From NCBI RefSeq assembly GCF_006345805.1, contig NC_043022.1, forward strand, positions 23,374,001-23,438,000: a stretch of 64,000 nt of DNA, given 5' to 3'. Below are positions 1,859 through 44,647 of this stretch, in pieces. Numbering within the stretch: the stretch's first letter is position 1; every line of letters starts with the position of its first letter. The translations under genes and the position numbers were made by a program. Source of the DNA: Octopus sinensis. Its lineage: Eukaryota. The notes under the pieces were generated by a model. The model was not told where the DNA came from and ran no database searches. It saw only the letters and a list, made by a program, of their open reading frames with translations.

Positions 1859-2064
1859 TCACTCCTCATCTAATGGTAAATATGGAATCGCACCATGACA
1901 CTCAGCATCAATGAGAGCCTTAGTTAAATTGCCTATTGTACACATCCCTGTCTCAGATATTTCCCACCATTTCTTCAACATTTGAAAACACTGTTCTTCA
2001 GTATTCCCTGGGATGTCAGATTGAATATTACCCAGGAAAACATCTTGAATGTCTAAATTTCGAC
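1859..2064 (-). CDS. Gene A exon 5 (last coding exon): C-terminal part of a death domain, Imd/RIPK-like adaptor
   Basis: Acceptor ttttattttcag|GT at 2064. Translates (G)RNLDIQDVFLGNIQSDIPGNTEEQCFQMLKKWWEISETGMCTIGNLTKALIDAECHGAIPYLPLDEE* with TGA at 1859-1861. 206 nt, phase-1 start fits exon 4. Death-domain pattern (R.L, EQ.FQML..W, T.G.L..AL). Confidence 0.88.
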
Positions 2065-3488
2065 CTGAAAATAAAAATATTATATCATTGACAACAACAA
2101 TAATAGTAGTAAATGATTTATAAATTTCAAGGGATACATAATGAAAAAATTTATGATAGGGAAAAATGGTGGACTGAAACAGTTGTCAACTGTTAACACT
2201 AAATTTTTAATACTGACTTTGGTTCTATGATACAAATTTCTTGTTTTTAAAGTGATTTTAATTAAAATCTTGAACCCAAATTTTATGTTAATTTAAATCA
2301 AAATCAAAATCAAGTTCAATGACTGGCAAAGAGCACCATACGAGTGTGATCGCTGACAGAATAGCTAACCGGCTTCAGTGCCAGTGGCACATAAAAGGCA
2401 CCATTCGAGTGTAATCGTTACCAGCGTCACCTTACTGGCACTTGAGCCCTGTGCTAGTAGGGTGCTAAGAGCACCATACGAGCATGATCGTCGCTAGAGC
2501 GACTAACTGGCTTCTGTGCCTGTGGCATGTAAAAGGCACCATTTGAGTGGGATCGTTACCAGCATCGCCTTACTGGCACCTGAGCCGGTGGCATGTGTAA
2601 AAAGATTCGAGCGAGGTCATTGCCAGTACTGCCTGACTGTCCCCCGTGCCGGTGGCACATAAAAGCACATACTACACTCTCGGAGTGGTTGGCGTTAGGA
2701 AGGGCATCCAGCTGTAGAAACTCTGCCAGATCAAGATTGGAGCCTGGTAGAGCCATCTGGTTCACCAGCGCTCAGTCAAATCGTCCAACCCATGCTAGCA
2801 TGGAAAGCGGACGTTAAATGATGATGATGATGATGACTAGCTTAATCTCAAAACAGTTATATTCATAAATTCATTATTTTCAACATTAATTACAACAAAA
2901 GAAGTGTTCCAACAAAAGTATGGTAACAAAAGGGTGAAGATTCTTTTCTTCTCCTCCTAGCAAGAACAACTTTAACTGAAATTTTTTCTTCATCACATTA
3001 AGTATCGTATCACTCACTAAACATTATTTTGTAGTTAGATAGGCATAGGGGTGGCTGGGTGGCAAGAAGATTTGTTTCCCAACTGCATGATTCCAGGTTC
3101 ATTCCCACTGCATGGGACCTTGGCCAAGTGTCTTCTACTATAGCCCCAGCCCAACCAAAACCTTGTGAGTGGATTTGGTAGATGGAAACTGAAAGAAGCC
3201 TGTCACACATGTGTGTGCATGTTTGTGTCTGTGTATGTTTCCACCACTGCTTAACATCCAGGGTTGGTGTGTTTGCATCTCTGTAACTTAGCAGTTCAGC
3301 AAAAGTGACTGATAGAATAAGCACTGGGCTTTAAAAACAAAGAAAATAAAGTATTGGATTCATCCGACTAAAACTTCTTTGAGGTGCTGCCCCAGCATGG
3401 CAACAACATAATGACTGAAGCAAGTAAAAAAACACATAAAGATATGATAGAAGCAAAACATCTAAAGCAATGTATATTTTATACTTAC

Positions 3489-3563
3489 CAACAGACTTCC
3501 ATTTATTCCCTAGGTATACGGCTATTTTGTTGAGTTGTTTCTGAGTCAGTTTTGTATTAGACT
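3489..3563 (-). CDS. Gene A exon 4: N-terminal part of the death domain
   Basis: tttttgcag|AG...G|gtaagt, 75 nt, phase 1-1. Translates (K)SNTKLTQKQLNKIAVYLGNKWKSV(G) and joins exon 5 in frame. Confidence 0.88.
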
Positions 3564-3597
3564 CTGCAAAAATATTTCCATGATTCTTAAGAATTTA

Positions 3598-3858
3598 TAA
3601 TAATAATAATGAAATTAATTGTATACAGTGCTCAGGTGCACCACAACTTGTCAGAAAGTGCGTATAAAGTACATGCAGTAATGTAGAAATGTCTAAAAAG
3701 CGAACAATGTATGAGTCAGATACATGCTTGTGTGTGTATGGAGGGGAGAAAATCAAGTGTAGTGTTGGCGAATCTCAAGAAGCATGGAAGTTTTGAAGGA
3801 TGCAGTGCTCCGACAACTAACAACTGATGCCGGTAGTTTGTTCCATGCTTCAGCAACC
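3598..3858 (-). mobile_element. CR1-type LINE 3' end
   Basis: Minus strand encodes ..AEAWNKLPASVVSCRSTASFK.. (CR1 ORF2 C-terminal W N.LP motif), followed by a 3' UTR and an (ATT)n tail. Confidence 0.7.
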
Positions 3859-4781
3859 CTATTGAAATGTTTCATATTTACTTTTTTGTTTAGAAATAAC
3901 AGCCAAATCACCATCAAATTTCACACTCTATCTTAACCCTGTGTTAATCATATGGGGTGTTTTGTCATCCCCCAATTTTTTAAATGCTTGCAATCCTTAG
4001 TTGGCAACTTGTTTTATTTTGCTCCTTCCCACTACCTTTCTGACTAAGTGAGGGTGTGTAGCATGTTGTGTGGTGCCACTGTAGCTCAGTTGTTGTGGAA
4101 GGCAGATGTCGCTTTGACATCAACTGGTGTGGAATCTGAGTGAACAGTACTGGCTATATATTAGGGAATACTGAAAAGTTCCTGGCTTTGAGTAAAAAAA
4201 AAAAAATTACTGGAGAATCAGTTTATTTATGATGTTATTCAACATCTTCTCTCAGATTCACACATTTATTGCAACAGTGTGACAGTTTTTCTAAGACCTG
4301 TAAAAGAGCTCAAAATATTCAACCTCCAGCCTGGCCTTATGGAACTTTTCAGCATTGCCTTCATAATCAGCTCACATTGATTTTGCTTTCCATTTCAACT
4401 CATAAGAAATATATTGTGGCTATTTTTGATGACTGAAACTTTTCTCTGTTATTGTATTGGGGTGTTTCACCTACAATTTGCAACATAAGTTTTTGCAATA
4501 AATTTATTATAATTTAAATTTCAACGAATAGTTATATTAGTTATATATTTAGTTGAAATTTTGATTTAATTTATATCGTAAAAGAGATTCCCTGTTATGT
4601 TATTTTTCTAAGCAGCATGACAATATTTTACATAATTGTAACTCTATAAGTATTTTTGTAAACACCCCACGGGACTATCCATTTTTGGAAACTTTAGACA
4701 TTCCACTCTTCAAGGCAATTTCACTGTACTCTTTCCATTACATTTTCCAAATAATGTAAGTGTTGCTGATGCCATGCTCAC

Positions 4782-4883
4782 TTATCATCTGCTCCCAATT
4801 CCAAACATCTCTCTCTTGTCCCCCATCCTTACTTATCATCTTCTCCCAATTCCATAAGTCTCTCTCTTGTCCTCCACCATCAA
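4782..4883 (-). CDS. Gene A exon 3 (51 nt, or 102 nt with the internal duplication)
   Basis: tggtcag|TT acceptor at 4883. Two in-frame donors: A|gtaagg (exon end 4833) and A|gtgagc (exon end 4782). Translates (F)DGGGQERDLWNWEKMI[SKDGGQERDVWNWEQMI]. A further in-frame acceptor lies at 4940 (ccccag|AT). The acceptor choice is uncertain. Confidence 0.6.
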
Positions 4884-4971
4884 CTGACCACATAGAGTGT
4901 ATTGTTTCAGGTTGGTAAGATCCACAAAAAAGTACTCTATCTGGGGAGAGATAAATTTTATTTAATATATA

Positions 4972-5545
4972 CACAAGCTGGAAACTACAGACTAGAAGAT
5001 GAGCCTCGTCCTGGAAGATCTGTGGAGCTCAACTAGGACATCCTGCAAACCCTGGTGGAACAAAATCCTATTGTAAGTGTTGAGGAACTAGCAGAAAAGC
5101 TTGGATTCATCGACACCTGTGTGCCATCGGAAAAGTAAGCAAATTGGGTCAATGGGTTGCTCACAAGCTTTCCAAGTCTAATCACGTGCTGTGAGTGAAT
5201 GTGTGCTCTTCTTTGCTGTCACATCTCATGAATGAACCTTTTTTGCCTCACCCACCATATTTGCTGGACATTGTCCCATCATTTATTCTGCAGTCTTCAA
5301 AATCATTTGAACGAAATAAATATGAATTCTGTAGAGAAGGTCAGAACAATACTGGAGAAGTATTTTTCATCACGGACAAGAGAATTTTGAAAGAGAGGCC
5401 TTGCAAGTCTACCAGATAAACAGAAGAGCATTGTAGAAAATGAAGGAGAGTAGAATTTAGATTAGAAAAGAACTTTGTTTATCTTAATTTTGGAAAATAA
5501 AAGAAGTATAAAAAATGCATTATTTACAGGGATAACCCAATATAT
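4972..5545 (+). mobile_element. Decayed, internally deleted mariner transposon
   Basis: LEDEPRPGRS..QNPIVSVEELAEKLG and GKVSKLGQWVAHKL resemble the mariner HTH/WVPHEL region. Contains stops and ends in a TIR-like ..ggataacccaata. Confidence 0.75.
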
Positions 5546-5547
5546 GT

Positions 5548-5566
5548 ATTATAGATAGATAGATTG

Positions 5567-5638
<72 letters not shown>

Positions 5639-5659
5639 TATATATAGATAGATAGATAG

Positions 5660-5726
<67 letters not shown>

Positions 5727-5747
5727 TTAGATAGATAGATAGGTAGG

Positions 5748-5795
<48 letters not shown>

Positions 5796-6055: not shown

Positions 6056-6433
6056 GGTCCAGTGATAGGGTTTCACACTCACAATTGCCAGATTGTGGGT
6101 TTCATCCCTGGATCAAGTGTTTTGATGTATTCTTGAGCAAAACATTTAATCTTGCTTTGATCTGCAATCAAATGACTGAAACAAGTAAAAGAGTAAAAAG
6201 TGTAAAAAGTGTAAACAAATGGAAACTACTTTTACTTACCGAGATACCTGCTGAATTTCACTTCCTCTTTATCGGTCTCACATTTTTTCTTCTCAGGTTC
6301 TGCGGTTTTCCTATTTGTGACATTAGATTCACCCCCAACTGCAACATTCTTTCCATTTCCAATATTTGCTGGAATAAATGTAAAATTTCTAACATAGCAT
6401 CAAGATCATAAATTCTTGAGAATATAATACATA

Positions 6434-8007: not shown

Positions 8008-8345
8008 AGCCTTGTGGAAACATTTGGGGTACATTTGCAGAGTTTAGCTGGTTGTTTGGGGAATTAATGGAAAGGGATTTTGTTTCAGATTCCTCAATAG
8101 GAAAGTGTGCTGCTTCTTGAGCATAAGAGCTACTAGCTCCTCTAAGAGAAAGCACAATGCAAGTATTCTTGCTGGAATTGTTACAAAGTGGAGGTAGTGC
8201 GTTAGTTTCATTAGATTTGGGTATTTCTCTTATTTTATCATTACCTTCTCCTGTAGGCTTGGGTACTACATTATTGTTCCCTTTTACATCTTCACTACTG
8301 AGTAATATATCAGGGTAACTGCTGGGCATAACAGTTTCATTTTTG
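8008..8345 (-). CDS. Gene A exon 2: low-complexity/disordered N-terminal region
   Basis: tttcattccag|C...T|gtaagc, 338 nt, phase 2-1, open (KNETVMPSS...NVPQMFPQG). Paralogous to 35940-36418 with the same splice phases. Confidence 0.8.
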
Positions 8346-14011: not shown

Positions 14012-14037
14012 CGATGCATTTCTCTGGATTCATCCAT
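14012..14037 (-). CDS. Gene A exon 1 coding part (MDESREMH-R)
   Basis: accATGG Kozak context, 26 coding nt, CG|gttagt phase-2 donor matching the exon 2 acceptor. Lies in a block homologous to 44590-44700. Confidence 0.75.
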
Positions 14038-14794
14038 GGTGGTCCCAACTATTTTCTGTGAATGACGTTCAACAAGAAGCTACAGCACAAGAAATACAAT
14101 ATATAGCTTATATATGTAGCTGTTCACGCAGGTGAGGAAAAAAAAGTGAATGACAGAGTGGGAGTGGGTAGTAGTGGCAGTCACTGATACAATAGACGAT
14201 TTCAATTACATAATTGTATTTAGGTCATCAGTTTCTATCTCTCTCATGCATGCACACAATTATTCATTTACCTGTTTCAGTCAGTTCACTGCAGCCATGC
14301 TGGAGCATTGCCTTTAGTTGAACAAATCAATCCCAGGAGTTATTCTTTGTAAGCCTAGTACTTATTCTATCAGACTCTTTTGCCGAACTGCTAAGTTACA
14401 GGGATGTAAACACACCAACATCTGTTGACAAGCAATGGTGATGGGGACACGGACACACAAATACATACATATGTTCACCATGTTGGACTGCTGAACTCTA
14501 CAAATTTTTATCATTCTCTCCCTGTTTATTTTCTTAAATGGCTGATAATCATCTTCCACGCCGCAACTGATATTGTTTCAGCACATGATCACAGATCAAA
14601 GTACTTTCTACGTAAGTACATTGCCGTAATTTAATTTTCATTTCGTGTCAGAATTTTCGTCGCTCGACCAGTATCACAGATGAAGTTTATCCAGGACAGA
14701 CACTAGCAGACAGACCAGATTTAACTGACAGAATATTTAATATGAATGTTTGGGAACTCTTGCATGATATTTTGGAGAAGAATGTTTTGGGAGA

Positions 14795-15640
14795 GGTTGC
14801 AGAGAACATGTGGGAGTGATTGCAGGGTGCATGTGGGAGAGGTTGCCGGGTACATGTGGGAGAAGTTGTAGGGTACATGTGGAAGAGGTTACAGAATACA
14901 CGTTGAAGAGGTTGCTGGGTACATGTGGGAGAGGTTGTAGGGTACATGTGGAAGAGGTTGTAGGGTACATGTGGGAGAGGTTGCCGGGTACATGTGGGAG
15001 AGGTTGTAGGGTACATGTGGAAGAGGTTGTAGGGTACATGTGGGAGAGGTTGCCGGGTACATGTGGGAGAGGTTGTAGGGTACATGTGGAAGAGGTTGTA
15101 GGGTACATGTGGGAGAGGTTGCCGGGTACATGTGGGAGAAGTTGTAGGGTACATGTGGAAGAGGTTACAGAATACACGTTGAAGAGGTTGTAGGGTACAT
15201 GTGGGAGAGGTTGCCGGGTACATGTGGGAGAGGTTGTAGGGTACATGTGGAAGAGATTACAGAATACATGTGGAAGAGGTTGTAGGGTACATGTGGGAGA
15301 GGTTGCCGGGTACATGTGGGAGAGGTTGCCGGGTACATGTGGGAGAGGTTGTAGGGTACATGTGGGAGAGGTTGCCGGGTACATGTGGGAGAGGTTGTAG
15401 GGTACATGTGGAAGAGATTACAGAATACATGTGGAAGAGGTTGTAGGGTACATGTGGGAGAGGTTGCCGGGTACATGTGGAGAGGTTGCCGGGTACATGT
15501 GGGAGAGGTTGTAGGGTACATGTGGGAGAGGTTGCCGGGTACATGTGGGAGAGGTTGTAGGGTACATGTGGAAGAGATTACAGAATACATGTGGAAGAGG
15601 TTGTAGGGTACATGTGGGAGAGGTTGCAGGGTACATGTGG
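14795..15640 (+). repeat. 23-bp minisatellite (gggtacatgtggRagaggttgYM) with variant units
   Basis: About 36 units. A variant ..ttacagaatacac.. recurs periodically. Confidence 0.9.
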
Positions 15641-16337
15641 ATTATAGAGTTTCAAAAGCATGTGCTACTCCATTGTCATATGTTGTTCGTATTAAAAAAA
15701 GATCCAGAAGATTATGATAAATTCGTTTATGCAGAACTTCCAATCCACAAACACAGCCAATTCTGTTTCGACATGTCACCAACAACATGCTAGATGGTTT
15801 ATGTGGGAGAGATAAACCCAATGCAACATGTATGGTTGATGGGAAATGTTAGGAACGTTTCCCTAAAGACTTTCAGGAAAATACATTACACAGTTATAAT
15901 GGCTATCCACTTTACCGATGTCGAAATAATGGTTTTTACATTTACAAAGTCGAATATTGAATTAGATAATCGTTCAGTAGTACCATATTCCTCACTTCTT
16001 TTTAGTCAAAAAAGGAGGTCATTTTAATGTAGAGATATGTGCATCTGTAAAATCAGATAAATATACTAGCAAATATATTGATAAAGGTCATGATTGGGTG
16101 ACAGTCAGTATCAGTGGACAAACCAATGCACAACAAACACACAAAGATGAAACTGAAAATTATATCAATGGTCGCTATGTATCTTCATCAGAAGCAGTCT
16201 GGAAGATTTTAGGGTTCAAATGACATGGTTCATATCCTGCAATCAAACAGCTTACAGTTCATTTACCCCAACAGCAATACATTTACTTTAATGACGATGA
16301 TGATATTGAACATGTTATCTGCACACATGACATGGAT

Positions 16338-16980
16338 GTGAGTTAACTGGGAATCACACACTGAATGGTTGTGAGTTAACCGGGAATCACACACTGAATG
16401 GTTGTGAGTTAACTGGGAATCACACACTGAATGGTTGTGAGTTAACTGGGAATCACACACTGAATGGTTGTGAGTTAACTGGGAATCACACACTGAATGG
16501 TTGTGAGTTAACTGGGAATCACACACTGAATGGTTGTGAGTTAACTGGGAATCACACACTGAATGGTTGTGAGTTAACAGGGAATCACACACTGAATGGT
16601 TGTGAGTTAACTGGGAATCACACACTGAATGGTTGTGAGTTAACTGGGAATCACACACTGAATGGTTGTGAGTTAACTGGGAATCACACACTGAATGGTT
16701 GTGAGTTAACTGGGAATCACACACTGAATGGTTGTGAGTTAACTGGGAATCACACACTGAATGGTTGTGAGTTAACAGGGAATCACACACTGAATAGTTG
16801 TGAATTAACCGGGAATCACACGCTGAATGGTTGTGAGTTAACTGGAAATCACACACTGAATGGTTGTGAGTTAACCGGGAATCACACACTGAATGGTTGT
16901 GAGTTAACCGGGAATCACACACTGAATGGTTGTGAGTTAACCGGGAATCACACACTGAATGGTTGTGAGTTTACTGGGAA
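16338..16980 (+). repeat. 33-bp minisatellite (gtgagttaactgggaatcacacactgaatggtt), about 19 copies
   Basis: Head-to-tail units with no unique spacers. Confidence 0.92.
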
Positions 16981-19299
16981 TTACCAGCTAAATCATTTGC
17001 ATGTACATTACTTTAGACTGATTTCCCTGAATTTTACTTATGGAATAATAGTGAGAAAATGTGGCATCTCAGAAAAAATAATACACACTCAGTTGGGGGC
17101 ATCTACTTTGTTTCACTCAAGGAACAAGAGCAATTCTGAGAGCTTTACTATATCATATTCCCTGAGCTACATCATTTGAGGATATGAGGACTATTAATGG
17201 CGTAGTTTGCCATAGTTACAAAGAGGCTGCAATGAAACTGGGTTTAGCACATGATGACCATGAATACTATTGCGCTGTGGATTTTGTAAATATTTCAGCT
17301 ATTCTGTATAAAATGCCAAAACTTTTCTGCTAAATTCTGAATTAATACATTCCATATTTTTTATTTTTATTTTTCATTTCTTTTACTTGTTTCAGTCATT
17401 TGACTGTGGCCATGCTGGAGCACCGCATTTTAGTTGATCAACTAGACCCCGGGACTTATTTTTTGTAAGCCCAGTACTTATTCTATACGCACACACATAT
17501 ATATATATATATACGACAGGCTTCTTTCAGTTTCCATCTACCAAATCCACTCACAAGGCTTTGGTCGGCCCGAGGCTATAGAAGACACTTGCCCAAGGTG
17601 CCATGCAGTGGGACTGAACCTGGAACCATGTGGTTGGTAAGCAAGCTACTTACCACGCAGCCACTCCTGCGCCTATGTATACTTATGTGCATCTGTAACA
17701 CAAATTATATGATACAATGTAAAATATGCTATCTTAAAGATAGTGTGTTTGCACTACTATATATATATATATCTTATGTAAAATCCATTGTCTGTCTGTG
17801 TGTGTGTGACTTCTCGGATCTCGGGCATCCTCCATCCGATTGCGCTCAAATTTGAAATGTAGATACCGACGGTATCAGGGCATGTATAAGTCTTGAAAAA
17901 ATTGATTCCAGGTGAGAATGCGATTGATAAAGCCGTTTTTGTCCTGCTTTTCTTCCGTCAACTAGTACATAACTGCACCTTCCGTTTTTTGTTGTTTTTG
18001 TACTGCTTAAAGGCACATTTTTTTCCTGCCAAGCTTACTGTTTAAACCATGTTTGTGTTCTCCTAGTCAACAGCCTTATCATTACTGGTACTTTAAACTC
18101 TTCGGTTGCATATTTGTGTGAATAAAATCGTTTTTCTTTGGAATAGAAAAAGAGTCTATTTTTGTTTCTTCTTTTGCTGGTGTCTCAAATTTAGGTTAAA
18201 TCAGTGTTTCTCAAAGGGGGTGGGGCTATGGGATGGTCGAACAAGTTGTTTTGAGAAAATTTGCTTTAAATGTTTGACAACTCAGCACTATCCATTGGCG
18301 GGGTGGGGTGGGGGCCTTTTGCTCATATATATATATCGTTGTATATATATATACATATATATACAGCCACTGAACCTCATATCCAGCAACCTTGTGACCA
18401 GAGATGGTCCAGAATTCTGGATTTTCCAGATTTCTGGACACAGGCTAAATATATACCAAAAATATAAAAGGTTGATATTTACTTTAATACTCGGCCACCA
18501 AAAAATTAAAAAAAACAAAGTGGGAATGGCACTCGTCATTGCTGGTGACCTGTATATGGCACCTCTGAATTGTGATTGTGATCGTTGCTGGTGTCTGTAA
18601 ATAGCATCTGTGGTGGTGGCACATAAAAGTACCCATTAAACTCCTGGAGTGGTTAGCATTAAGAAGGGCATCTGGCTTTATAAGCCATGCCAAATCGAAC
18701 TGGAACCTCGTGCAGCTCTCCAGCATATCAACCCCAGTCAAACTGTCTAACCTGTGCCAGCATGGAGAGTGGATGTTGAATGATGTTGATGATATATCTA
18801 TGTATATATATACATGTATATAAATATATACACACATATATATATACATGTATATATATACATACATATACATATATCTATATATATATACATACCTACA
18901 TATATATATATGTGGATGTATGTGTGTGTGTTTATATGTGTGTGTGTTTGTGTGTATGTATTTATATAATATAGACTTCTACTATAACATAGGGCCAACC
19001 AAATCCTTGTGAGTAGATTTGGTAGATGGAAACTGAAAGAAGACCTTTATATGTATGTTTATGCTTATATATATCATCATCATCATCGCTTAACGTCCAT
19101 TTTCCATGCTAGTATGGGTTGGATGGTTTGACTGAAGACTGGCAAGCCGGGAGACTGCACCAAGCTCCACTCTATTCTGGCAAGGTTTCTACAGTTGAAT
19201 ACCCTTCCTAACATCAACCACTCCAAGAGTGTAGAGGATGCCTTTTACATGCCATTGGCACAGGTGCTAGCCAGGAGGCACTGGCATCTGTCACGGCAA

Positions 19300-20255: not shown

Positions 20256-22250
20256 CCTGAAACTTCTTCTTTATTGCAAATAGCTGTTACGGGGTTGCAG
20301 GGCATGCTAAAGTTGAACAGTTCCAACCAGTCAATTTCAAAATGAATGCTTGTATTTTGTAATACATAAGCTTTTGCTTTTATAGTTTTACAATGAAATG
20401 TAACATTACAAATAATTTCACCTTCAAAAATTAATTTAATCCTCAAGACTCCACGAGCAAGCTTTGAGGTTTTCTGTAGTGAAGGTTTCCTGATTTTTTT
20501 TCCATGTATTTTCATTAATTAAAATAATGTCACTACCTGTGTCTAACTGTAATTTTACATTTGTATTATTAAATTTTACATACATAAATTTCTTTTAAGT
20601 CTCATCTTTATTTCTTGTCACTGATAAACAGTTTACGTGATTTTTTTCTGTTGAACCATTTGCTACATTTTGTTTAAAAGTGTGATTTTTTATGACCTAT
20701 CTTACTACACTTGAAGCATTTTCAATTTTTATAAGGACAGTCAAATTTGTAGTGTAATTCTCCACATCTAAAACATGGGTTAATATTCTCCTTTTCATTA
20801 CTTACCTTTGGTCACACCAATTGTATATGTGATCGGCATTCCTCAGATATTTTAGATATATCTTGTAATATTAGCTTCTGATTCTGCTCTAATTTAGTCA
20901 GAATTTGGTTCCGAATTTCCACATTTTTCTTTGCTATTAAACTTTTCACGAAAATTAAATATTTAAACATATAGCTCATTACTTTTAAATCTCTCACATT
21001 CTCTATCCCTATTAACAATTCCAGTATATGTAATAAAATATTCATCTTATTTTTCTGTAATATTCATGCATTGCCAATGCATATTAAATAAAGAGCTTTT
21101 TCGCTGAAAATCTTAGACAGAATATTCACATTTTCTTCAAAACAGACTTTACCTGGTCTCTTTGGTAATATGTAATTTCAATATTTCTCATGCTTGGCTG
21201 ATGCCAGCTATCTCAACAAAAGTCAGGTTTGATTTATCGTCTTGCTAGTCAGAGCACTCATCTTTAAAAATTTCTTCATACCCTCTAAAGTAAGAAGGAA
21301 AAGTAGTACCCTCCTCTGGGTTATATACAAACTCTCAGATGGAGTTTGTGACCATGTCAGAATGAACTACACATTCTGCCTATATATTGATTGATTGAAA
21401 TAATGTTGTCATTAAGCTTTTACCTTTATATTATACTACAGAAGACGGTTAGGATTACAATTTTTGTATGACTTAACAGAGCTGTCGCTGTTTAGTTATG
21501 TAATTAGGAGTGGTTGTAATTTACTTATGGAATGTATTTATCGATATGTTTGTACATTGGGTAAATGTGTTTGAAAGTTGTGGTTTCTTTGGTTTACTTG
21601 TTCCCAAACAACACTTATTTTAGTGCTGTTGACACTGCCAGATTGAATGGTACAGCCCAGGTGTTAAAACCATAATGATATCTGATGGGCAGCTGATGAT
21701 GGGGATATGTTGGATTATTGGTATGGCTGTTTTTGTATACATGGATTAGTATTATTGGATTGTTGGTATGACTGTGGAATAGTATTATAACACATCCTTT
21801 TGATATATTTTCTGTTTTCTTCTGTAGCCATTGTACTAACAGTTGCTGTTGCTTCTGCAATTCCAACAACTGCTGGTATTGCTGCTGTTTCTGTAATTGA
21901 ATTACCAGAGCTAGTAAATCTTCCATGTTCAAACAATAACCTGTCCAGCATGGGTTCGAATATCCTCATCACCAAAAATATTATGACATGTGTGTAAGAA
22001 TAGTATTACCCAAATAATTACTTGGATATGGTTATCTAGAATAACCTATCACAGAATTATTACGTTAACACAGAATGCACTCCGTACTACTCCAAACCTA
22101 GCTATGATATTAAACTAACACAGTAACCAATATGGACAATCAATGCTATCAACTTTCTGATAGTTCACACAGTTCTTTATTTATTGAAAATCCGTTAGTC
22201 CGTTTTTTTGTCACATGGAGGTGTTCAGGATCCTTCCACAACAATTTTGA
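20255..22250 (-). mobile_element. Decayed Ty3/gypsy LTR element: 5' LTR, PBS, gag and protease remnants
   Basis: Candidate LTR about 21984-22250 starting TGTGG. PBS-like TGGTGATGAGGAT at 21962-21974. Gln-rich gag start MEDLLALVIQLQKQQQ, then EFVYNPEEGTTFPSYFRGYEEIF, and protease-like FEGEIICNVTF..AYVLQNT..DW. Multiple stops. Confidence 0.7.
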
Positions 22251-22894: not shown

Positions 22895-23097
22895 TCACTC
22901 CTCTAATGGTAAAAATTGAATTGAATCATAACATCCAGCCTCAAAGAGAGCATTAGCTAAATTGCCACTTGTACATGTGTCCGGCTTGGAAATCTGTAAC
23001 CATCTGTTTAACATTTGAAAACTTTGTTCTTCAACATTATTTTGGTTGTTTGCTTCTATGTTTTCCAGCTCAGCGTTTTTAATTTCTAGATCCCGAC
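22895..23097 (-). CDS. Gene B exon 5 (last coding exon): C-terminal part of a death domain
   Basis: ttttattttcag|GT, 203 nt. Translates (G)RDLEIKNAELENIEANNQNNVEEQSFQMLNRWLQISKPDTCTSGNLANALFEAGCYDSIQFLPLEE* with TGA at 22895-22897. Confidence 0.88.
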
Positions 23098-26024: not shown

Positions 26025-26684
26025 TTGGAGGGTTAAAGTCATAAAGAAGAAGCTTAATAACAAAACAGTTATATTCATAAATTCATTATTTTCAACATTA
26101 ATTACAACAAAAGAAGTGTTCCAACAAAAGTATGGTAGCAAAAGGGTGACGATTCTTTTCTTCTCCTCCTAGCAAGAACAACTTTAACTGAAATTTTTTC
26201 TTCATCACATTAAGTATCGTATCACTCACTAAACATTATTTTGTAGTTAGATAGGCGTAGGGGTGGCTGGGTGGCAAGAAGATTTGTTTCCCAACTGCAT
26301 GATTCCAGGTTCATTCCCACTGCATGGGACCTTGGCCAAGTGTCTTCTACTATAGCCCCAGCCCAACCAAAACCTTGTGAGTGGATTTGGTAGATGGAAA
26401 CTGAAAGAAGCCTGTCACACGTGTGTGTGCATGTTTCCACCACTGCTTGTCATCCAGGGTTGGTGTGTTTGCATCTCTGTAACTTAGCAGTTCAGCAAAA
26501 GTGACTGATAGAATAAGCACCGGGCTTAAAGAAAAAAAAAAAGAAAAGAAAGTATTGGATTCATCCGACTAAAAATTTTTCGATGTGCTGCTCCAGCATG
26601 GCAACAACATAATGGCTGAAGCAAGTAAAAAATAAAGATATGATAGAAGCAAAACATCTAAAGCAATGTATATTTTATACTTAC

Positions 26685-26759
26685 CAACACGCTTCCATTT
26701 ATTCCCTAAGTATATGGATATTTTGTTGAGGTGTTTCTCAGTCAGTATTGTATTAGACT
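26685..26759 (-). CDS. Gene B exon 4: N-terminal part of the death domain
   Basis: tttttgcag|AG...G|gtaagt, 75 nt. Translates (K)SNTILTEKHLNKISIYLGNKWKRV(G). Confidence 0.88.
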
Positions 26760-26961
26760 CTGCAAAAATATTTCCATGATTCTTAAGAATTTATATTGAA
26801 ATGTTTCATATTTACTTTTTTGTTTAGAAATAACAGTCAAATCGCCATCAAATTTCACACTCTATCTTAAATGCTGGACATTCCACTCTCCATGACAATT
26901 TCACTGTACTCTTTCCATTGCATTTTCCAAATAATGTAAGTGTTGCTGATGCCATGCTCAC

Positions 26962-27012
26962 TTATCATCTGCTCCCAATTCCATACATCTCTCTCTTGTC
27001 CCCCATCCTCAA
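26962..27012 (-). CDS. Gene B exon 3 (51 nt)
   Basis: tggtcag|TT...A|gtgagc, phase 1-1. Translates (F)EDGGQERDVWNWEQMI(K). The upstream acceptor seen in gene A is mutated here (cag->tgg) and the extension contains a stop, so only the 51-nt form is open in both copies. Confidence 0.6.
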
Positions 27013-27104
27013 CTGACCACATATACTATACTGTTTCAGAATGGTAAGATCAACAAAAAAAGTACTCCATCCAGGGAGAGATAAATAATATTTACTAAAA
27101 ACAT

Positions 27105-27344: not shown

Positions 27345-30150
27345 ACCATTTTTTCTCACCACATCATTCCATGTCTCCCTGGGTCTACTCCTTCCATATG
27401 TTCCTCCACATTTAGAGCTCAGCACTTCTTTATGCAGCTATCCTAATCCATAGGCATCACATGACCAAATCAGCACAGTCTTCTCTCTTGCACACAACAT
27501 ATGATGCCTCTTATACCCAGTTTTCCCCTTAAATCATTTACACTCTGTTATGCATATACTACTACTTCTAATGATCCACCCAAACATTTGAGGGAGTCTA
27601 TTGTCTGCATATTTTTAGTGCTTATTGTACCTGCACATTTGCCACACACAAAGACTATATTCTTAGTTAACCTTCCTTTGACACTGCTGCACCTCTTATG
27701 TGTTCAAAGTTTGCATGAGGAGTTTCTACCTACGCTCTTCTTACATACCAAGCAGGACCATCTCCTAGAAGGGATTTGTGATTTATCTGTTTCCCTACTT
27801 ACTAGGACTTTTGGTTTTTGCTAAATTAACCCTAAGGCTCTTAGATTCTAGATCTTGTTTCTAGATCCGAAATTGCTTCACTAGGTCAGTCAGTGATTCA
27901 GCTATAAGAACAAGGTCATCAGCATAGAGAAGCTCCCAAAGACAACCAATCTTGAATTCCTCTGTTAAGGCCTGGAGGACTAAGATAAACAGGAGGGGGC
28001 TGGGAACTGAGCCTTGGTGGACTCTCACCTATACACTGAATTCATTGCCAACCTTCACCTTACTGGCAGCATTCCTGTACATGGCTTGTTACTAAACACT
28101 CATTCACTATTAGCTTTCACATTGACCACCAGATAAGGGAGCAGGGCACCCTGTCAAAGGCTTTCTTCATGTTGACAAAAGCCAGGTACAGAGGTTTATT
28201 TTAAGCCAAATATTTCTCCTGCAGTTGTCTAACCAGGATTATGGCATCAGTCATGCTCCTGCCTGGCACAAATCTGAACCGCATCTCATCTACACTATCT
28301 CTGTTCCTAATTAATTGAGCTATGACTCTTTCTATGACTTTCATCACATGGTCCAGCAATTTGATGTCTCTGTAATTATCACTTTTGTCTTTGTAGCAGT
28401 TGACTATAATGCTGCTACACCAATCATTGGGTATGACTCCCTCATGGACAATCTGATTAAATATACTAGTGACTAAGCTATATCCTACTCGAGATATTTT
28501 AAGCATCTCAGCAGTGATTCCTGATGGGCCAGGGACTTTTCCTCTCTTCATGTCTTTAATTGCTTTATCTATCAAGTTACTATCGATTCAGATAGCTGGT
28601 CCCTCAGTAGGGCCAACATCTGGCAGACTCTCCTCCCATTAGTTCTCCACATTTAACAGCCTTTCATAATGGCATTTCCAAGCCATTTTCTTAGCAGAAT
28701 CATTAAATGCAAGTAAACTATCATCCATGCAGACACATTTCTCTCCTATGACATCACAATTTTCTCTCACACACTGTCTTGCAATCTGAAACACTTCAAG
28801 TCTCTGGTCCTCATGTAGCAGAACATTGGCAAACTTCTTTTCTGCTTTTTCCCTGGCTAAGTACACCTATCTCATAACTTTCCTTCTGACTATCTGATAT
28901 AGTTTCCTGATACCATCACACTTCCAGGCTTGTTTCTTTTCTTCTCTAATGGCCCTTTCAACTATACTGTTCCATCACCATGTCACCACAGATCAAGAAG
29001 GGACTTAGCAGATTTAAACAGCAGCCTTTAACAGGTTGTCTTGTAGGAACCTCCAGTTGTTTTCCACATTATATGTTGCTATATCTTCCTCTTTTCCAGC
29101 AAATCCTTCAAGTAACACATCTCTAAATCTCTGTCCATTCAGATGATCCTTAAGCTTCTAAACCTTTCTTTTCCATACAGGTTGTCATCTGGGCAGCCAT
29201 TTATCTCTGATCCTGAAGTATTTAACAACTAACTTATGTTGAGTGGGGTGCATTCTTCACCTGGGAAAGTTTTGGCATTTATAAGTAGCCATCTTCCCCA
29301 TTTTCTGGCAAGAATGTAGTCAACCTGACTAGTGTACCCTCTAGATTGGTAGGTGAACAGGTGACTGGGAGGTCTCCTGAAATTAGTATTGTAGATCATA
29401 AGGTCATTTGAATCACAGAACTCCAGCAGCCTGGCTCCCTCCTCATTACAGGAACCAAATCTGTTGCCACCATGCATGGCATGGAAGCTACCAAGATGTT
29501 GTCCAACATGCCCATTGAAGTTGCCAGCTACAAAGAGAAGGTCCCTGACATTCATCAATGAGGTGGTCTGCAAAAGGGTGTCATAAAATCGGTCTTTCTG
29601 TTCATCAGGTAGTCTCAGCTGAGGGGAATAGCCCAAGCTAATGGTTGCTGCTCCACATTGCAACACCAGTCTAAGCCTAAGTATTCTATCACACACTCTG
29701 ACTACCTCGATTACCTTATCAATCCATTTTAAAAAATAAGTTGGGGTTTTTTCAAAATTAACCCTAAGGCCCTTAGATTCCAGATCTTGTTTCTAGACCT
29801 GATATTGCTTCACTAGGTCAGGTAGTGATTCAACTATAAGAACAAGGTGATCAGTGTACAGAAGCTCCCAAGGACAACCCCCAACCCTATCACTGTTTCC
29901 TACCCAGAAGATTTTATACCTATGGTCTTTGCCTATGAGAAACCTAGCAGAACCTTCTCTGCACCTTACTTCTCAGATGCAACACACTCTACATTCCTCT
30001 GTTCAAGCATCTCAACAATCTCCCCAAACTTACCTTTCAACCTATCAATGTGCCCCATTAAATGTGTGTGGCAAATCTGAGGGTGTGGAAGGTGTGGGCC
30101 AGGGAGACACAGGGATGGGGGATAGCATTTTGCATCTAGAAAGCAAGCTT
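27345..30150 (-). mobile_element. Decayed, rearranged RTE-clade LINE (endonuclease and RT fragments)
   Basis: ISLGYSPQ..LFVAGNFNGHVG..YTSQVDYIL (APE endonuclease); GKVPGPSGITAEMLK..NYRDIKLLDHVMK..FRFVPGRSMTDAI (RT). Stops and frameshifts. 27850-27910 and 29760-29850 are duplicated pieces. Confidence 0.85.
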
Positions 30151-31336: not shown

Positions 31337-31380
<44 letters not shown>

Positions 31381-31393
<13 letters not shown>

Positions 31394-32448
31394 ATTTATG
31401 TGTTTGTGTTTGTCTCCCCAACATCACTTGACAACCGATGGTGGTGTGTTTGCGTCCCTGTAACTTAGCGGTTCGGCAAAAGAGACTGATAGAATAAGTA
31501 CTAGGCCTACAAAGAATAAGTCCTGGGGTCAATTTGCTCGACTAAAGGTGGTGCTCCAGCATGGCCACAGTCAAATGACTGAAACAAGTAAAAGAGTAAA
31601 GAGGTTTAAAAAGGAAATGAGTGCTGGGGGTCGAATAGTTCGACTAAAATCCCTCAAGGCAGTGCCCCGGCATTGCAACAGTCTAATAACTGAAACAAAT
31701 AAAAGATTAATATGAAATCAACAAAGAGAAACTGCGTTTACTTACTGAAATATTTGCTGAATTTCTCCCTATGATTCACGCATTTTATCCTATCTTCTGA
31801 AGAGTATACATTTGTGACATTAGCGTTACCAATGAATACATTGCTCATTCCAATATTAATATTTGCTAGAATAAATGTATAAAATTCTAACTTAGCATTA
31901 GAGCATAAATTTTTGAGAATATAATATATACATAGGCATGGCTGTGTATTAAGAAGTTTGCTTCTCAACCACATAGTCCCAAGTTCAATCCCAGTGCAAG
32001 GTACTTTGGACAAGACTCTCCTAATATAGCCCCAGGTCAACCAAAATCTTTTCAGTAGATTTGATAGATAAAATCTGAAAGAAGCCCGTTTGTGTGCATG
32101 TGTATGTATGGCCCAGTGGTTAGAGCATCAAGTTCACAATCATGAGGTAATGACTTCAATTCCTGAATCGGGCTCTGTGTTGTTTTCTTGAGCAAAGCAT
32201 TTTATTTCGCATTGCTCCAGTTCACTCAGCTGTAGAAATGAGTTGTGACATCACTGGTGCCAAGCTGTATTAGTCATTACCTTTCCCTTAGACAACATCA
32301 GTGGTGCGGAGAGGGGGGGGGGCTGGTATGCATGGGTGACAGCTGGTTTTCCACAAAAAAACTTGACCAGACTTGTGCCTCAGAGGGGAACCTAGGTGCA
32401 ATCCCATGGTCATTCATGACTGAAGGAGGTCATTACCCTTTACTCTTA

Positions 32449-32494
<46 letters not shown>

Positions 32495-33545
32495 ATTTAT
32501 GTGTTGTGTTTGTCTCCCCAACATCACTTGACAACGATGGTGGTGTGTTTGCGTCCCTGTAACTTAGCGGTTCGGCAAAAGAGACTGATAGAATAAGTAC
32601 TAGGCCTACAAAGAATAAGTCCTGGGGTCAATTGCTCGACTAAAGGTGGTGCTCCAGCATGGCCACAGTCAAATGACTGAAACAAGTAAAAGAGTAAAGA
32701 GGTTTAAAAAGGAAATGAGTGCTGGGGGTCGAATAGTTCGACTAAAATCCCTCAAGGCAGTGCCCCGGCATTGCAACAGTCTAATAACTGAAACAAATAA
32801 AAGATTAATATGAAATCAACAAAGAGAAACTGCGTTTATTACTGAAATATTTGCTGAATTTCTCCCTATGATTCACGCATTTTATCCTATCTTCTGAAGA
32901 GTATACATTTGTGACATTAGCGTTACCAATGAATACATTGCTCATTCCAATATTAATATTTGCTAGAATAAATGTATAAAATTCTAACTTAGCATTAGAG
33001 CATAAATTTTTGAGAATAATATATACATAGCATCATGCTGTGTATTAAGAAGTTTGCTTCTCAACCACATAGTCCCAAGTTCAATCCCAGTGCAAGGTAC
33101 TTTGGACAAGACTCTCCTAATATAGCCCCAGGTCAACCAAAATCTTTTCAGTAGATTTGATAGATAAAATCTGAAAGAAGCCCGTTTGTGTGCATGTGTA
33201 TGTATGGCCCAGTGGTTAGAGCATCAAGTTCACAATCATGAGGTAATGACTTCAATTCCTGAATCGGGCTCTGTGTTGTTTTTTGAGCAAAGCATTTTAT
33301 TTCGCATTGCTCCAGTTCACTCAGCTGTAGAAATGAGTTGTGACATCACTGGTGCCAAGCTGTATTAGTCATTACCTTTCCCTTAGACAACATCAGTGGT
33401 GCGGAGAGGGGGGGGGCTGGTATGCATGGGTGACAGCTGGTTTTCCACAAAAAAACTTGACCAGACTTGTGCCTCAGAGGGGAACCTAGGTGCAATCCCA
33501 TGGTCATTCATGACTGAAGGAGGTCATTACCCTTTACTCTTTATA
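31381..33545 (+). repeat. About 1.09-kb direct tandem duplication
   Basis: About 31381-32455 and 32483-33545 are near-identical; the differences are mostly 1-bp indels. Confidence 0.9.
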
Positions 33546-33599: not shown

Positions 33600-34890
33600 A
33601 GTTCACAGGTGATCTAAATGATTAAGTACAAACACCCTGAAGAGCTACAGCATTATGCTGATAAAAATGATATGAAAACATGTTATTCAGGACTTTGAAT
33701 GGTATGCGAGCCACAGAGTAGAGGCGCAACAAAACTCATAGGTCTTGGTGGCCAAACGATATTCCAGGAAAACCTGGAGATCCTTGATAGATTTGCCAGT
33801 CACTTTGACAGCCTACTTAATATCCCAAGTATCAATGGACTATGACACTCTCAAGAAGGTTACGCAACAGCTAATCATCCAATCCTTAGATGACAAACCT
33901 GTTTACAATCAATTCAATGACGTAATCAAACAACTGAACGAAAGTAAATACCCACTGAAATCTGGAAGCATGGAGGTGTAGAGATTATTAAAAGCCTGTA
34001 TAGCACTGTGCTCCAGATCTGGAAGACGGAAACGGTTCCACAAGACTGGAAAGACACAGGCATCATTCTTGTCTTCAAAACAGGTTGTAAAGTGAACTCT
34101 GGAAACTACTGAGGAATATCTCTTCTATCAATAGCTGGGAAGATCTTGGCTCATATTCTATTAAACAGACTAAATGAGTATATCTGTCTTACCTGAGACT
34201 CAGTGTGGCTTCCATTGCAGAAGCACTGTGGATATGATCTTCTGTCTATGCAAAATTCAGGAAAAATGCATTGAGCTGAATATGCCTATGTATGTAGTTT
34301 TCATAGATGTCACAATGGCTTTTGACACAGTATCAGTCCTACACGAAGGAATGCAAGCATTTATAGTACAAAATAGTAATACCTCAAGTGAGGTTGCAGT
34401 GATAAATGAAGTTAGTCAGGGGTGCATACTTGCTCCAGCACTGTTCTCCCTCTATCTCACAGCAGTGTTGGAAGTTGCCTTTAAGGAAGTTGGAGTGGGG
34501 CTTACATCTAGATGTGGCATGATGTTGATCTGTTCAAGGCTGCACAATATAAAGCAAAGACATGCATTATAAAGGCCCTATTGCAAAAGATGCTGATGAT
34601 AGTGCACCAGTTGCCTACAGTGCTGAAGATATGCAGAATCTGGTAGGTAACTTTGCTAGAGCTGCACAAAAATTCAGCTTAAAGATTAACATTAGAAAAA
34701 CCAAATGCCTTTACCAACCTGTGGAGAACCTACATGTGCCTGTAACAGAAGAAAACATCACTATTAGATATGAAAGGCTGGCCCAATGCAAAGCATTCAA
34801 ATACCTAGGCAGTACCATCTCAGATAATGCATGACTGGACCAGGAAATCACATACAGAATGAGCAGAGCTAGTGCTTCATTTGGCAGACT
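33600..34890 (+). mobile_element. RTE (BovB-type) LINE RT fragment
   Basis: ..GISLLSIAGKILAHILLNRL..LPETQCGF.CRSTVDMIF..KIQEKC..FID.TMAFDTV..QGCILAPALF..FKYLGSTIS. Contains stops. Confidence 0.85.
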
Positions 34891-35939: not shown

Positions 35940-36418
35940 AGCATTGTGAAAACATGTTTAGAGCTTTTGCTCCTTCTGAATGAGGATCATTATAAGAGGA
36001 GTCTGGCTGGTTGTGAAATAGATCATCTTTATGGCATCTTGGGTCAAATTCTTTTCTGGGATCCTCTCTGGGAAGGAGTGTTGCTTGCATATTATAGCTA
36101 CGAGTTCTTTTAGGGACCAACATGGCAGGAGTATTCTTGCTAGGATAATCACAAGGTCGAGGTACTGCATCAGTTTTACTGTCGCTATCTTCATTAGATT
36201 TGGGTATTGCCCTTATTTTATTGTGGCTTTCTTTTGTAGGCTTGGGTATTGAATCGTCATCATTTCTGTCATTTTCATTAATTATGGGCACTGCTTTAGT
36301 TTCTGGAGTTTCACTAAGACTAGGTAATGTATCAGAGTTACTGATGGACGTTTCAAAGCATACAGGCTCTGTATTGGTTTCAGAATTGTTTAATGGTACA
36401 GCATCAGTTTCATCTTCT
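35940..36418 (-). CDS. Gene B exon 2: disordered region with DETD|AVPL, ETK|AVPI and SKTD|AVPR motifs
   Basis: ttttattccag|A...T|gtatgc, 479 nt, phase 2-1, fully open. Confidence 0.82.
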
Positions 36419-36568
36419 CTGGAATAAAAATGAAAGATGAACAAAATATCTATTATGAGTTGATTCCACAAACATGAATGTATATATTTAACCCTTTTGT
36501 TACCATATTTCTGTTGAGATGCTCTGTGTTTCTTTCAATTATTTTAAATATAACAAAGAATTTAATAA

Positions 36569-36668
36569 NNNNNNNNNNNNNNNNNNNNNNNNNNNNNNNN
36601 NNNNNNNNNNNNNNNNNNNNNNNNNNNNNNNNNNNNNNNNNNNNNNNNNNNNNNNNNNNNNNNNNNNN
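36569..36668. other. Assembly gap (100 N) in gene B intron 1
   Basis: Run of n; the true size is unknown. Confidence 1.
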
Positions 36669-42697: not shown

Positions 42698-42732
<35 letters not shown>

Positions 42733-42773
42733 AATATAAATGTAAATATAAATATATATGTAAATATATATAT

Positions 42774-43095
42774 ATAAAATTAGAAAAAAATCACCTTTCA
42801 TCAATTCAAAATGAACAATTAAATTACACCATCCAGTAAATTACACATAATAGAAATATTAACATTAAAATAACAATAAAATGTCAAAGATTAAGTAAAT
42901 TGCAAAAAAATAATAATAATAATTAGTACAAATTGTAGAAAATTAGTTATTATTATTATTTTTTTGCAATTTACTTAACCTTTGACATTTTATTGTTATT
43001 TTAATGTTAATATCTCTATTATGTGTAATTTACTGGATGGTGTAATTTAATTGTTCATTTTGAATTGATGAAAGGTGGTTTTTTTCTAATTTTAT
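42774..43095. repeat. Long near-perfect inverted repeat (about 150-bp arms, 24-bp spacer) flanked by (TA)n
   Basis: 42774-42922 is the reverse complement of 42947-43095 with about 3 mismatches plus A-run length differences. Confidence 0.9.
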
Positions 43096-44621
43096 ATATA
43101 TATATATATATTACTAGCAGTATCGCCCGGCGTTGCTCAGGTTTGTAAGGGAAATAACTATAAAGCATTTTTAGAGAGTTATAGCCAAAAAATAGCAAAA
43201 AAATGATGGTAAATTTTTTTGAGAGTTAAAAAAGGTGGAGTTGCGTCCCCTAGACAGTTTGTGGTTTGTGTTTCTGATTCTCGACCCCATGTCGAATTTA
43301 TCGATTTTTTTCAGAACTGGGGGAACTTTTCAAAATTTTGGCTGCGTTAGTTTTGAATTATGACATTGGGCTATGTGTGTGTCAAGTTTCATCAGAATCG
43401 GTTGAAAGCCGTGGTCAGGGTGAGGGTACAAGCAAACAGACACACAGAAACACGCACAGACAAACTGCCGTTTATATAGAGAGAGATATTGTGTGAAATT
43501 TGATTTAGTACTTCTAAATTGAATTTTTTTTCCTTGTAAGTTTTGGATTTGATCCCCTCAAATATTAATAATTATGTAAATATATATATATATACACATA
43601 CATACATAAGTATATATATACACATATATATATATTTCTTTACTGCCCACAAGGGGCTAAACATAGAGGGGACAAACAAGGACAGACAAAGGGATCCCAG
43701 TGCGAAACTGGTGCTTTATTTATCGACCCGGAAAGGATGAAAGGCAAAGTCGACCTCGGCGGAATTTGAACTCAGAACGTAACGACAGACGAAATACCGC
43801 TAAGCATTTCGCCCGGCGCGCTAACGTTTCTGCCAGCTCATATAAGTGGAAGGCCAGTTTATGGGATTATTTTAGATTTCCCGTCCATTAAGGATTTAGC
43901 CTTATGGCGTATCGTTAGATCCCAAAAATCCGTTGGCCCATGACCTCTTGTACATACAATAAGCATAACAAATTTTTTGTTTGACTGTCACTCCTCAATT
44001 TTCAAACAGTGCAGCCAAAGAGAGAAAATTCACTCGAAAGTAAAATATATCTATCTACACACACACACATTCTTATACAAGAATGTTGTTGACAATAACT
44101 TCGAAGTTTCAGCCAGCTAACCCAACGTCCGACGAAGGTTTGGCTGGCCAAATCTTCGACGGACTATGAACAACATACTTGTATAAGGACAAATCTGTAA
44201 ACAATTGACAAATTAAATTTAAATGTTGAAGTGAATCTAACGGGTTTTGTGTTGTTTTTAAATGGCATTCTGTATTTGTTTCAGCACACGATCTCAGATC
44301 AGGTCACTTGCTATGCAAGTACATCTCCGGGAAATAAATTTGTACACCACAGTACAGAGTAACCCATCAGATTAATGTAAAATTGCTTTTATTATAACAG
44401 GACGTTAAAACAAACACGTGCGCGCGCGTGTGTGTATGTGTGTGTGTGTGTGTGTACGTAGGCGCTTCCTGGTTCACTGGATAAGAATTACGTGTTTATT
44501 CTATGATAAGAATGTTTCAGCATTCGATAGAAATTTAACAGCCGTAAAATAAAAACAAAAAGAGATGGATTTAAACGCAAAAGTTATTTTGAAAAGTTAA
44601 GAATAGTATTCTTTGACTGAC

Positions 44622-44647
44622 CTATGTAGTTCACTGGATCCGTCCAT
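44622..44647 (-). CDS. Gene B exon 1 coding part (MDGSSELH-R)
   Basis: gccATGG Kozak context, 26 coding nt, AG|gtcagt phase-2 donor. Same length and phase as gene A exon 1. Confidence 0.75.

Follow-up and report, generated by a model that had tools for sequence, protein, structure and literature searches.

A tandem pair of putative kinase-less RIPK1/Imd-family genes in Octopus sinensis, one of them Imd-like in its motifs

A 64,000-nucleotide stretch of the Octopus sinensis genome (positions 23,374,001 to 23,438,000 of contig NC_043022.1; hereafter the window) carries two neighboring genes on its minus strand, which we call A and B. Both are predicted to encode small adaptor proteins of the family that contains vertebrate RIPK1 and insect Imd, and the case from their sequences that they are kinase-less members of it is solid. 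The fuller reading that we favor is probably correct. The two genes form a tandem pair, each encoding a probably disordered N-terminus, a RHIM-like exon and a death domain of the RIPK1 type; B is Imd-like, and A is a modulator, a decoy or simply a fast-diverging copy. B is recognized here for the first time as combining what appear to be all three hallmarks of Imd: a caspase site that would expose an IAP-binding motif, a RHIM-like segment and the death domain.

Imd is usually regarded as an arthropod adaptor. To our knowledge, the relay of peptidoglycan and other microbial signals to NF-kB has not been worked out in cephalopods, a question of importance to both haemocyte immunity and squid-bacteria symbioses. 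B is a concrete candidate for that relay step, and its sequence names the residues to mutate: D14, A15 and the VFIG at 178-181. The relationship between RIPK1 and Imd is a further question on which B has a bearing. A 2025 study, as cited in a review, is said to place the origin of RIPK1 and RIPK3 in Mollusca. Our literature search turned up no paper on an Imd-like adaptor from a cephalopod.

The genes themselves are not hidden, as an initial annotation made from the letters of the window alone had called them. The window is 100% identical to O. sinensis chromosome CM016884.1 (GCA_006345805.1). It has the composition of eukaryotic DNA, with a GC content of 38.5%, many transposons and microsatellites and a single run of N (36569-36668). 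B is RefSeq LOC115224810 (XP_036369520.1, 311 aa) and A is RefSeq LOC115224809. A protein search returned orthologues from O. bimaculoides, named 'RIPK1 isoform X1/X2' (302 and 300 aa), and from O. vulgaris, named 'RIPK1-like'; lengths across the public models range from 205 to 311 aa. Neither the genes nor their family label is new, since public databases already contain both. What is new is the corrected exon structure, the triad of motifs in B, the contrast between B and A and a likely assembly problem at the gap.

We rebuilt both genes from the sequence. They are minus-strand paralogues with GT-AG introns in phases 2, 1, 1, 1, with first coding exons of 26 nt and fourth exons of 75 nt, all as the initial annotation had described. 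Splicing the exons proposed there reproduced its products exactly (277 aa for B, 231 or 248 aa for A), and the death-domain exons are, as it stated, missing from the mechanical list of open reading frames (ORFs). Exons 1, 2, 4 and 5 of the proposed models match public models from three Octopus species, but exon 3 is wrong in both genes. Every public model of B reads SNINIGMSNVFIGNANVTNVYSSEDRIKCVNHREKFSKYF between exons 2 and 4, as opposed to the FEDGGQERDVWNWEQMI first proposed. The true junction is KFSKYF-K-SNTIL, not one through 'EQMIK', and the third exon of B is bounded by the acceptor TTATTCTAG and the donor GTAAGT. The corresponding exon of A (6240-6368) is confirmed by RefSeq LOC115224809 (P0007) and by an O. 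vulgaris model (P0006). With the third exons corrected, the product of B is 300 aa long and that of A 257 aa.

The 5' end of B is confirmed by the start MDGSS[G/E]LHR-EDE, found in both O. bimaculoides X1 (P0005) and an O. vulgaris model (P0003). Models from these two species also support the splice from exon 1 to exon 2. The RefSeq model of B in O. sinensis starts elsewhere, in an exon about 1.5 kb past the end of the window. When the O. bimaculoides orthologue of B was rebuilt exon by exon, it had the same five-exon structure and its translation was exactly P0005; a contig look-up for isoform X2 (P0002) gave no match. The N-terminal region encoded by exon 2 of B is probably disordered, as expected from its composition.

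What, then, is the third exon of the initial annotation? We treat it as intronic sequence that apparently chances to stay in frame. It lies in intron 3, has a weak acceptor without a pyrimidine tract and occurs in no public model. In A, a 51-nt tandem duplication within intron 3 (4782-4883) supplies two in-frame GT donors, which accounts for the alternative products of 231 and 248 aa. The proposed exon does keep the frame open and obey the GT-AG rule; every copy and species that we looked at has its sequence, which at its end shows a weak alignment to the residues immediately preceding helix 1 of the RIPK1 death domain. It is nonetheless very improbable that the models with a 51-nt exon and no RHIM exon are the true products. 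No public isoform from four octopod species uses that exon, its acceptor is poor and its similarity between species (94.6%) is at the neutral level (synonymous divergence, dS, 0.107), with all three differences from O. bimaculoides non-synonymous. The RHIM exon, by contrast, is flanked by strong splice sites, and no model omits it.

The recovered exon of B contains the RHIM-like stretch (31804-31863, minus strand), with its core VFIG at 31828-31839, residues 178-181. In an alignment of 14 sequences from several phyla, NVFIGNANVTNV of B aligns with GIQIGNSNVMHI and GVQIGDNNYMEI of RIPK1 (IQIGxxNxMxI) and with RVQLGNVINITV and GVHIGKSISYNI of Imd (VQLG/VHIG), as well as with amphioxus, annelid and nemertean segments. 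We also built a RHIM hidden Markov model (HMM) without any cephalopod sequence and scanned all six-frame segments of the window with it. The two copies of B exon 3 ranked first and second (E 0.04 and 0.4), and exon 3 of A ranked fourth (E 2.7, not significant). We have moderate confidence that the B segment is RHIM-like and low confidence that the A segment is. A review describes a 'cryptic' RHIM in insect Imd that forms signaling amyloids (PMC13506858). Two ideas about this exon were discarded along the way. INIG had been taken as the core in B, and IGNG as its ruined counterpart in A; in the multi-phylum alignment the cores fall instead at VFIG and VAVG, respectively. A census of RHIMs among the 150 best relatives recovered solely the input sequences of the HMM and was dropped as circular.

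The death domain is the sole Pfam domain in A, B and their orthologues. With the corrected products, Pfam Death (PF00531) scores 40.3 bits for B (3.5e-10) and 26.6 bits for A (6.6e-6), against a gathering cut-off of 22.6; the products first proposed score similarly (4.5e-10 for B, 4.2e-6 for A). The core residues of the domain are conserved. No kinase match was found by Pfam in A, B or the orthologues, and the same scan shows a clear kinase in a protein from Owenia (P0039). Nor does the window contain a kinase ORF; the 19 kb upstream of B consists of a full-length long interspersed element (LINE) and other repeats.

Which death domains are the closest? A search of the PDB with the single B sequence returned the RIPK1 death domain as the best match (8e-9). 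With a profile of four octopus sequences, the RIPK1 death domain (5e-14) scored about 26 bits above those of ankyrin-2 (7e-6), FADD (6e-5) and TRADD (4e-4); MyD88, IRAK and EDARADD were not among the matches of this family comparison. An exhaustive search with a profile of the RHIM-like segment plus the death domain gave 740 matches. The two elements were aligned as one stretch in vertebrate RIPK1 and in kinase-RHIM-death-domain proteins of Owenia and amphioxus, but also in kinase-less proteins of Argonauta, a sea slug and a nemertean, in the insect 'protein immune deficiency' (Anabrus) and in beetle Imd. Most matches to the 14-sequence profile were fragments of vertebrate RIPK1; beetle imd was also among them, and the search gave no picture of kinase-bearing forms in molluscs. 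Comparison of profiles by hhalign matched insect Imd end to end, RHIM included (98.2%, E 4.6e-14, 138 columns), and RIPK1 over the death domain only (97.5%, E 4.8e-12). Pairwise, B scores 40-44 bits with insect Imd, 38-41 with vertebrate RIPK1, 42 with the kinase-bearing form of Owenia and 34 with amphioxus. An AlphaFold2 model from a four-sequence alignment was poor (mean pLDDT 60), and its Foldseek matches were meaningless (best E 2.5).

The initial annotation had proposed a pair of death-domain adaptors of the Imd/RIPK1 type and had called for HMM and profile comparisons of the spliced proteins. That proposal stands: the proteins match Pfam Death and, by profile, both RIPK1 and Imd; their death domain is of the RIPK1 type; their profile of RHIM-like segment and death domain aligns end to end with insect Imd; they have no kinase; and they contain a RHIM-like exon that the annotation had missed.

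The third hallmark lies near the N-terminus of B. Residues 11-18 read DETD/AVPL (36391-36414, exon 2; the slash marks the predicted cut), and a second motif, KTD/AVP, occupies residues 90-95 (TD/AVP at 36160-36171). Both are kept in O. bimaculoides, as DEID/AVPL and KTD/AVPQ. When the N-terminal region of B was shuffled, two such motifs appeared in 0.035% of the shuffles (P=0.00035). A related protein with RHIM and death domain, from a transcript-sized contig, has three (D/AMPV, D/ANPI and D/AMPI). We found no D/A-x-P motif in A. In insects, DREDD cuts Imd at LEKD/A in Drosophila, LETD/A in other flies, LTTD/A in beetles and LKSD/A in moths (PMC6626034). The exposed alanine starts an IAP-binding motif on which both DIAP2 binding and K63 ubiquitination depend (PMC6626034). 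The insect Imd sequences that we retrieved (P0122 and P0150) show LTTD/SVPE and LTTD/ARPQ. The N-terminal motif of B matches, at the level of sequence, the caspase site and IAP-binding motif of insect Imd.

Does B act like Imd, or like RIPK1 with its kinase removed? The same proteins could be RIPK1-like scaffolds in death-receptor or TNFR-type complexes, leading mainly to caspase-8-dependent cell death and not from peptidoglycan to NF-kB. Their death domain is closest to that of RIPK1 among solved structures, their orthologues are annotated as RIPK1-like, and B is equidistant to RIPK1 and Imd. Still, we consider such a role unlikely. The proteins have no kinase domain, the N-terminal D/AVPL is a hallmark of Imd and not a feature of RIPK1, and the short architecture, with its spacing from RHIM to death domain, aligns end to end with Imd.

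For B as an Imd-like adaptor, we infer both its mechanism and its signaling to NF-kB by analogy with Drosophila Imd. B would first join an activated receptor complex, by way of its RHIM-like segment, its death domain or both. The death domain would then bind FADD, bringing in a caspase-8 homologue that would cut B after D14 (DETD/AVPL) and possibly also after D92. The new AVPL N-terminus would bind the BIR domain of an IAP E3 ligase, and K63 ubiquitin chains built on B would recruit TAK1/TAB and IKK, activating NF-kB/Relish. Since A has kept the death domain, lacks the cleavage and IAP-binding module and has a RHIM-like stretch that is not significant, it could compete for death-domain partners. 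It is more likely to be such a modulator or decoy, or else a fast-diverging copy.

The history of the locus bears on this view of A. The initial annotation had suggested a lineage-specific tandem duplication in a cephalopod, and the pair is indeed common to O. sinensis, O. vulgaris and O. bimaculoides. A and B appear to be old paralogues: between them dS is 0.67 and the ratio of non-synonymous to synonymous rates (dN/dS) is 0.59. The tract around exon 4 (2839-4964 in A, 26051-27094 in B), including introns and a shared repeat resembling a short interspersed element, is 93-97% identical between the genes, as against about 75% at exon 5. On account of this difference the tract looks like one of gene conversion.

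Copy number differs between sister species. In O. vulgaris (our contigs L005, 49678-63165, and L003, 1-5243) at least one extra, chimeric copy lies between B and A. Its exon 1 is of the A type and its exon 5 A-like; exon 2 is of the B type, with a frameshift, and exon 4 is B-like. Downstream of A there is one more exon 1 of the A type (L003, 44605-44660). In O. sinensis the next 8 kb downstream of the window showed no extra copy. In O. bimaculoides the A copy (L002, 23300-23420 and 25321-25432) has lost the ATG of exon 1, its exon 3 is still open (NISIGTNVVVMGDSSI...), and its RefSeq model is a 116-aa protein consisting of the death domain only.

Divergence between species is rich in amino-acid changes. 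For B against O. bimaculoides, pairwise dN/dS is 0.94 overall and 2.8 in the death domain (2 synonymous and 22 non-synonymous changes, P=0.12). For A against the O. vulgaris copy it is 2.3 overall, and the death domain has 0 synonymous and 16 non-synonymous changes (P=0.026). Gene conversion, copy-number differences and high dN/dS together make a dynamic locus, consistent with an immune gene family. Alternatively, A, and with less likelihood B, might be a decaying or non-functional duplicate whose frames are open only because the copies are young or have been homogenized by gene conversion. Ratios at or above 1, the absence of the caspase/IAP-binding motif and of a significant RHIM-like stretch from A, the truncated A orthologue of O. 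bimaculoides and the frameshifted extra exon 2 of O. vulgaris all fit such decay. We judge it quite unlikely, however. The five-exon frame of A is intact, with good splice sites, in both O. sinensis and O. vulgaris, and RefSeq has models for both copies. The divergence of A from B is old, so the frame has long been maintained. The core residues of the death domain are conserved, and the excess of non-synonymous changes in the death domain of A points to positive selection.

The assembly gap needs separate consideration. It lies within intron 1 of B, 150 nt from the acceptor of exon 2, so no reading frame crosses it. In the gapless O. vulgaris sequence its flanks lie 21.8 kb apart: window positions 38200-36669 correspond to L005 8673-10202, and 36568-35900 to L005 31986-32654. 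The initial annotation had allowed for additional N-terminal exons hidden in the gap or the introns. The O. vulgaris interval (L005 10203-31985) holds at least three LINE copies with endonuclease and reverse transcriptase, and in it we found no kinase, DED, CARD, death-domain or RHIM exon; RefSeq does add upstream 5' exons to both A and B. The O. bimaculoides alignment stops at 36491, before the gap is reached, with simple repeats only thereafter. O. vulgaris has two copies, with identities of 99.2% and 99.4%, of the segment beginning at the gap (window 36568-32959); one of them is L005 59556-63165. The gap is thus placed at the edge of a segmental duplication.

A second irregularity affects exon 3 of B. 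A tandem duplication of 1.05 kb (31347-32400 and 32447-33494, 98.6% identity) gives the gene two identical RHIM-like exons. O. vulgaris and O. bimaculoides each have a single copy, and the duplication in O. sinensis is either very recent or an assembly artefact. Were both copies spliced in together, the frame would stay open and encode 340 aa with two RHIM-like modules.

Several observations weigh against our reading of the pair. B is, by its pairwise scores, equidistant from Imd and RIPK1, and these favor neither as its orthologue. The closest non-orthologous death domains belong to octopus ANK-RING-death-domain proteins (1e-13 to 1e-20), so the death domain taken by itself does not point specifically to Imd. 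The Pfam RHIM model PF12721 matches neither A nor B, and our independent RHIM HMM reaches just E 0.04 for B and no significance for A; PF12721 also misses genuine insect Imd. We saw no caspase/IAP-binding motif in the kinase-less homologues from the gastropod and the nemertean, and that of B could therefore have arisen by convergence or be a chance match. At this locus the O. sinensis assembly itself may be in error, either collapsed or misjoined. Finally, the dN/dS values near or above 1 come from small counts and fit either positive selection or relaxed constraint.

A bolder form of the Imd-like reading is that B is a working equivalent of Imd in a mollusc: cut by a caspase-8 homologue, ubiquitinated by an IAP and assembled through its RHIM-like segment with RHIM-bearing sensors to activate NF-kB. 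This we put forward tentatively, as a possibility that is less likely than not. If it were true, the full Imd module (caspase site and IAP-binding motif, cryptic RHIM and death domain) would predate the split between arthropods and lophotrochozoans. Vertebrate RIPK1 would be the same adaptor with a kinase attached. In A and the chimeric copies of O. vulgaris we would then see decoys that evolve fast under the pressure of conflict with pathogens.

Table 1. Exons of genes A and B, the third exons rejected here and the assembly gap, in window coordinates
Feature	Position	Strand	Remarks
A upstream 5' exon, RefSeq model	21153..21191	-	Encodes MRNIEITYYQRDQ
A exon with ATG at 14037	14012..14079	-	26-nt coding part 14012-14037; RefSeq extends 5' to 14079
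A exon 2	8008..8345	-	338 nt; a RefSeq isoform uses an internal donor after 8245
A exon 3, true	6240..6368	-	129 nt; phase 1-1; encodes SNIGNGKNVAVGGESNVTN...; weakened RHIM-like stretch
A 'exon 3' of the initial annotation	4782..4883 (or 4833-4883)	-	51 or 102 nt; unsupported; absent from P0007 and P0006
A exon 4	3489..3563	-	75 nt; death domain predicted to begin here
A exon 5	1859..2064	-	206 nt including stop codon; remainder of death domain
B first coding exon, MDGSSELH isoform	44622..44647	-	26 nt; GCC ATG G context; donor GTCAGT
Assembly gap	36569..36668		Within B intron 1, 150 nt upstream of the exon 2 acceptor
B exon 2	35940..36418	-	479 nt; N-terminal region; 100% identical to P0001 (O. 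sinensis protein)
B exon 3, upstream duplicate	32843..32962	-	120 nt; coding sequence identical; weaker donor GTAATA
B exon 3, true	31746..31865	-	120 nt; phase 1-1; encodes SNINIGMSNVFIGNANVTNVYSSEDRIKCVNHREKFSKYF; equals P0001 residues 180-219
B 'exon 3' of the initial annotation	26962..27012	-	Unsupported; intronic, in intron 3
B exon 4	26685..26759	-	75 nt; death-domain helices 1-2; identical to P0001
B exon 5	22895..23097	-	203 nt including stop codon; death-domain helices 2-6; 100% identical to P0001

Repeats occupy much of the sequence around these exons. A full-length LINE on the plus strand (50807-55656), with an ORF1 of 477 aa (zinc knuckle) and an ORF2 of 1145 aa (endonuclease, reverse transcriptase, zf-RVT), may still be active; it sits in the first intron, a long one, of B as modeled by RefSeq. 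Intron 2 of B holds a plus-strand fragment (34174-34834) with a match to Pfam RVT_1 at 34174-34572, and intron 3 holds minus-strand ORFs with retroelement-like translations (27861-29696), two of which were scanned and gave no Pfam match. A plus-strand ORF of 173 aa at 62793-63314 has a Pif1 helicase 2B domain (2.5e-15); it probably belongs to a Helitron-type element or is a fragment of a Pif1-like gene. Two minisatellites, at 14788-15640 (37 copies of a 23-nt unit) and 16322-16981 (20 copies of a 33-nt unit, 96% matches), give long spurious ORFs. Both lie between the upstream 5' exon of A and its ATG exon, a stretch that differs in O. vulgaris.

How do the octopus proteins compare with known members of the family and with other carriers of similar domains? 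The octopus ANK-RING (MIB-like)-death-domain proteins (XP_029656683.1, XP_036356145.1) have ankyrin repeats and a RING and are without the RHIM-like exon; their role is presumably different. The O. sinensis loci with the closest non-orthologous death domains (P0015, P0018, P0019, P0022 and P0035) comprise such proteins and a 132-aa protein annotated as 'RIPK1', which suggests an expansion of this type of death domain in octopus. The proteins of Owenia fusiformis (CAH1778590.1) and Branchiostoma (XP_066290314.1) share the stretch of RHIM and death domain, but have a full protein kinase domain. Three others have the same kinase-less architecture of RHIM plus death domain: those of Plakobranchus ocellatus (GFO02766.1, 164 aa), Tubulanus (XP_074654609.1, 176 aa) and Argonauta hians (GAB1602126.1). 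The first two are shorter than the octopus proteins, and no D/A-x-P motif was seen in either; the Argonauta protein is the closest relative outside Octopus.

Vertebrate RIPK1 has the best-matching death domain among solved structures and, where the octopus proteins have their RHIM-like segment, a RHIM-type motif upstream of it. Unlike them, it has a kinase domain and a long intermediate domain, and it is without the N-terminal caspase/IAP-binding module of the Imd type. Insect Imd, as represented by Drosophila Imd, Tenebrio TmIMD and the Anabrus simplex protein (XP_067002410.2), differs from the octopus pair in other respects. Identity is only about 26%, the N-terminal region of B is much longer and has a second D/AVP motif, and A is without the motif. 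Yet insect Imd is, like B, small (about 210-280 aa) and kinase-less, with a death domain at its C-terminus. It has a caspase site and IAP-binding alanine near its N-terminus, to which DETD/AVPL would correspond in B, and a cryptic RHIM in the middle, where B has its RHIM-like segment.

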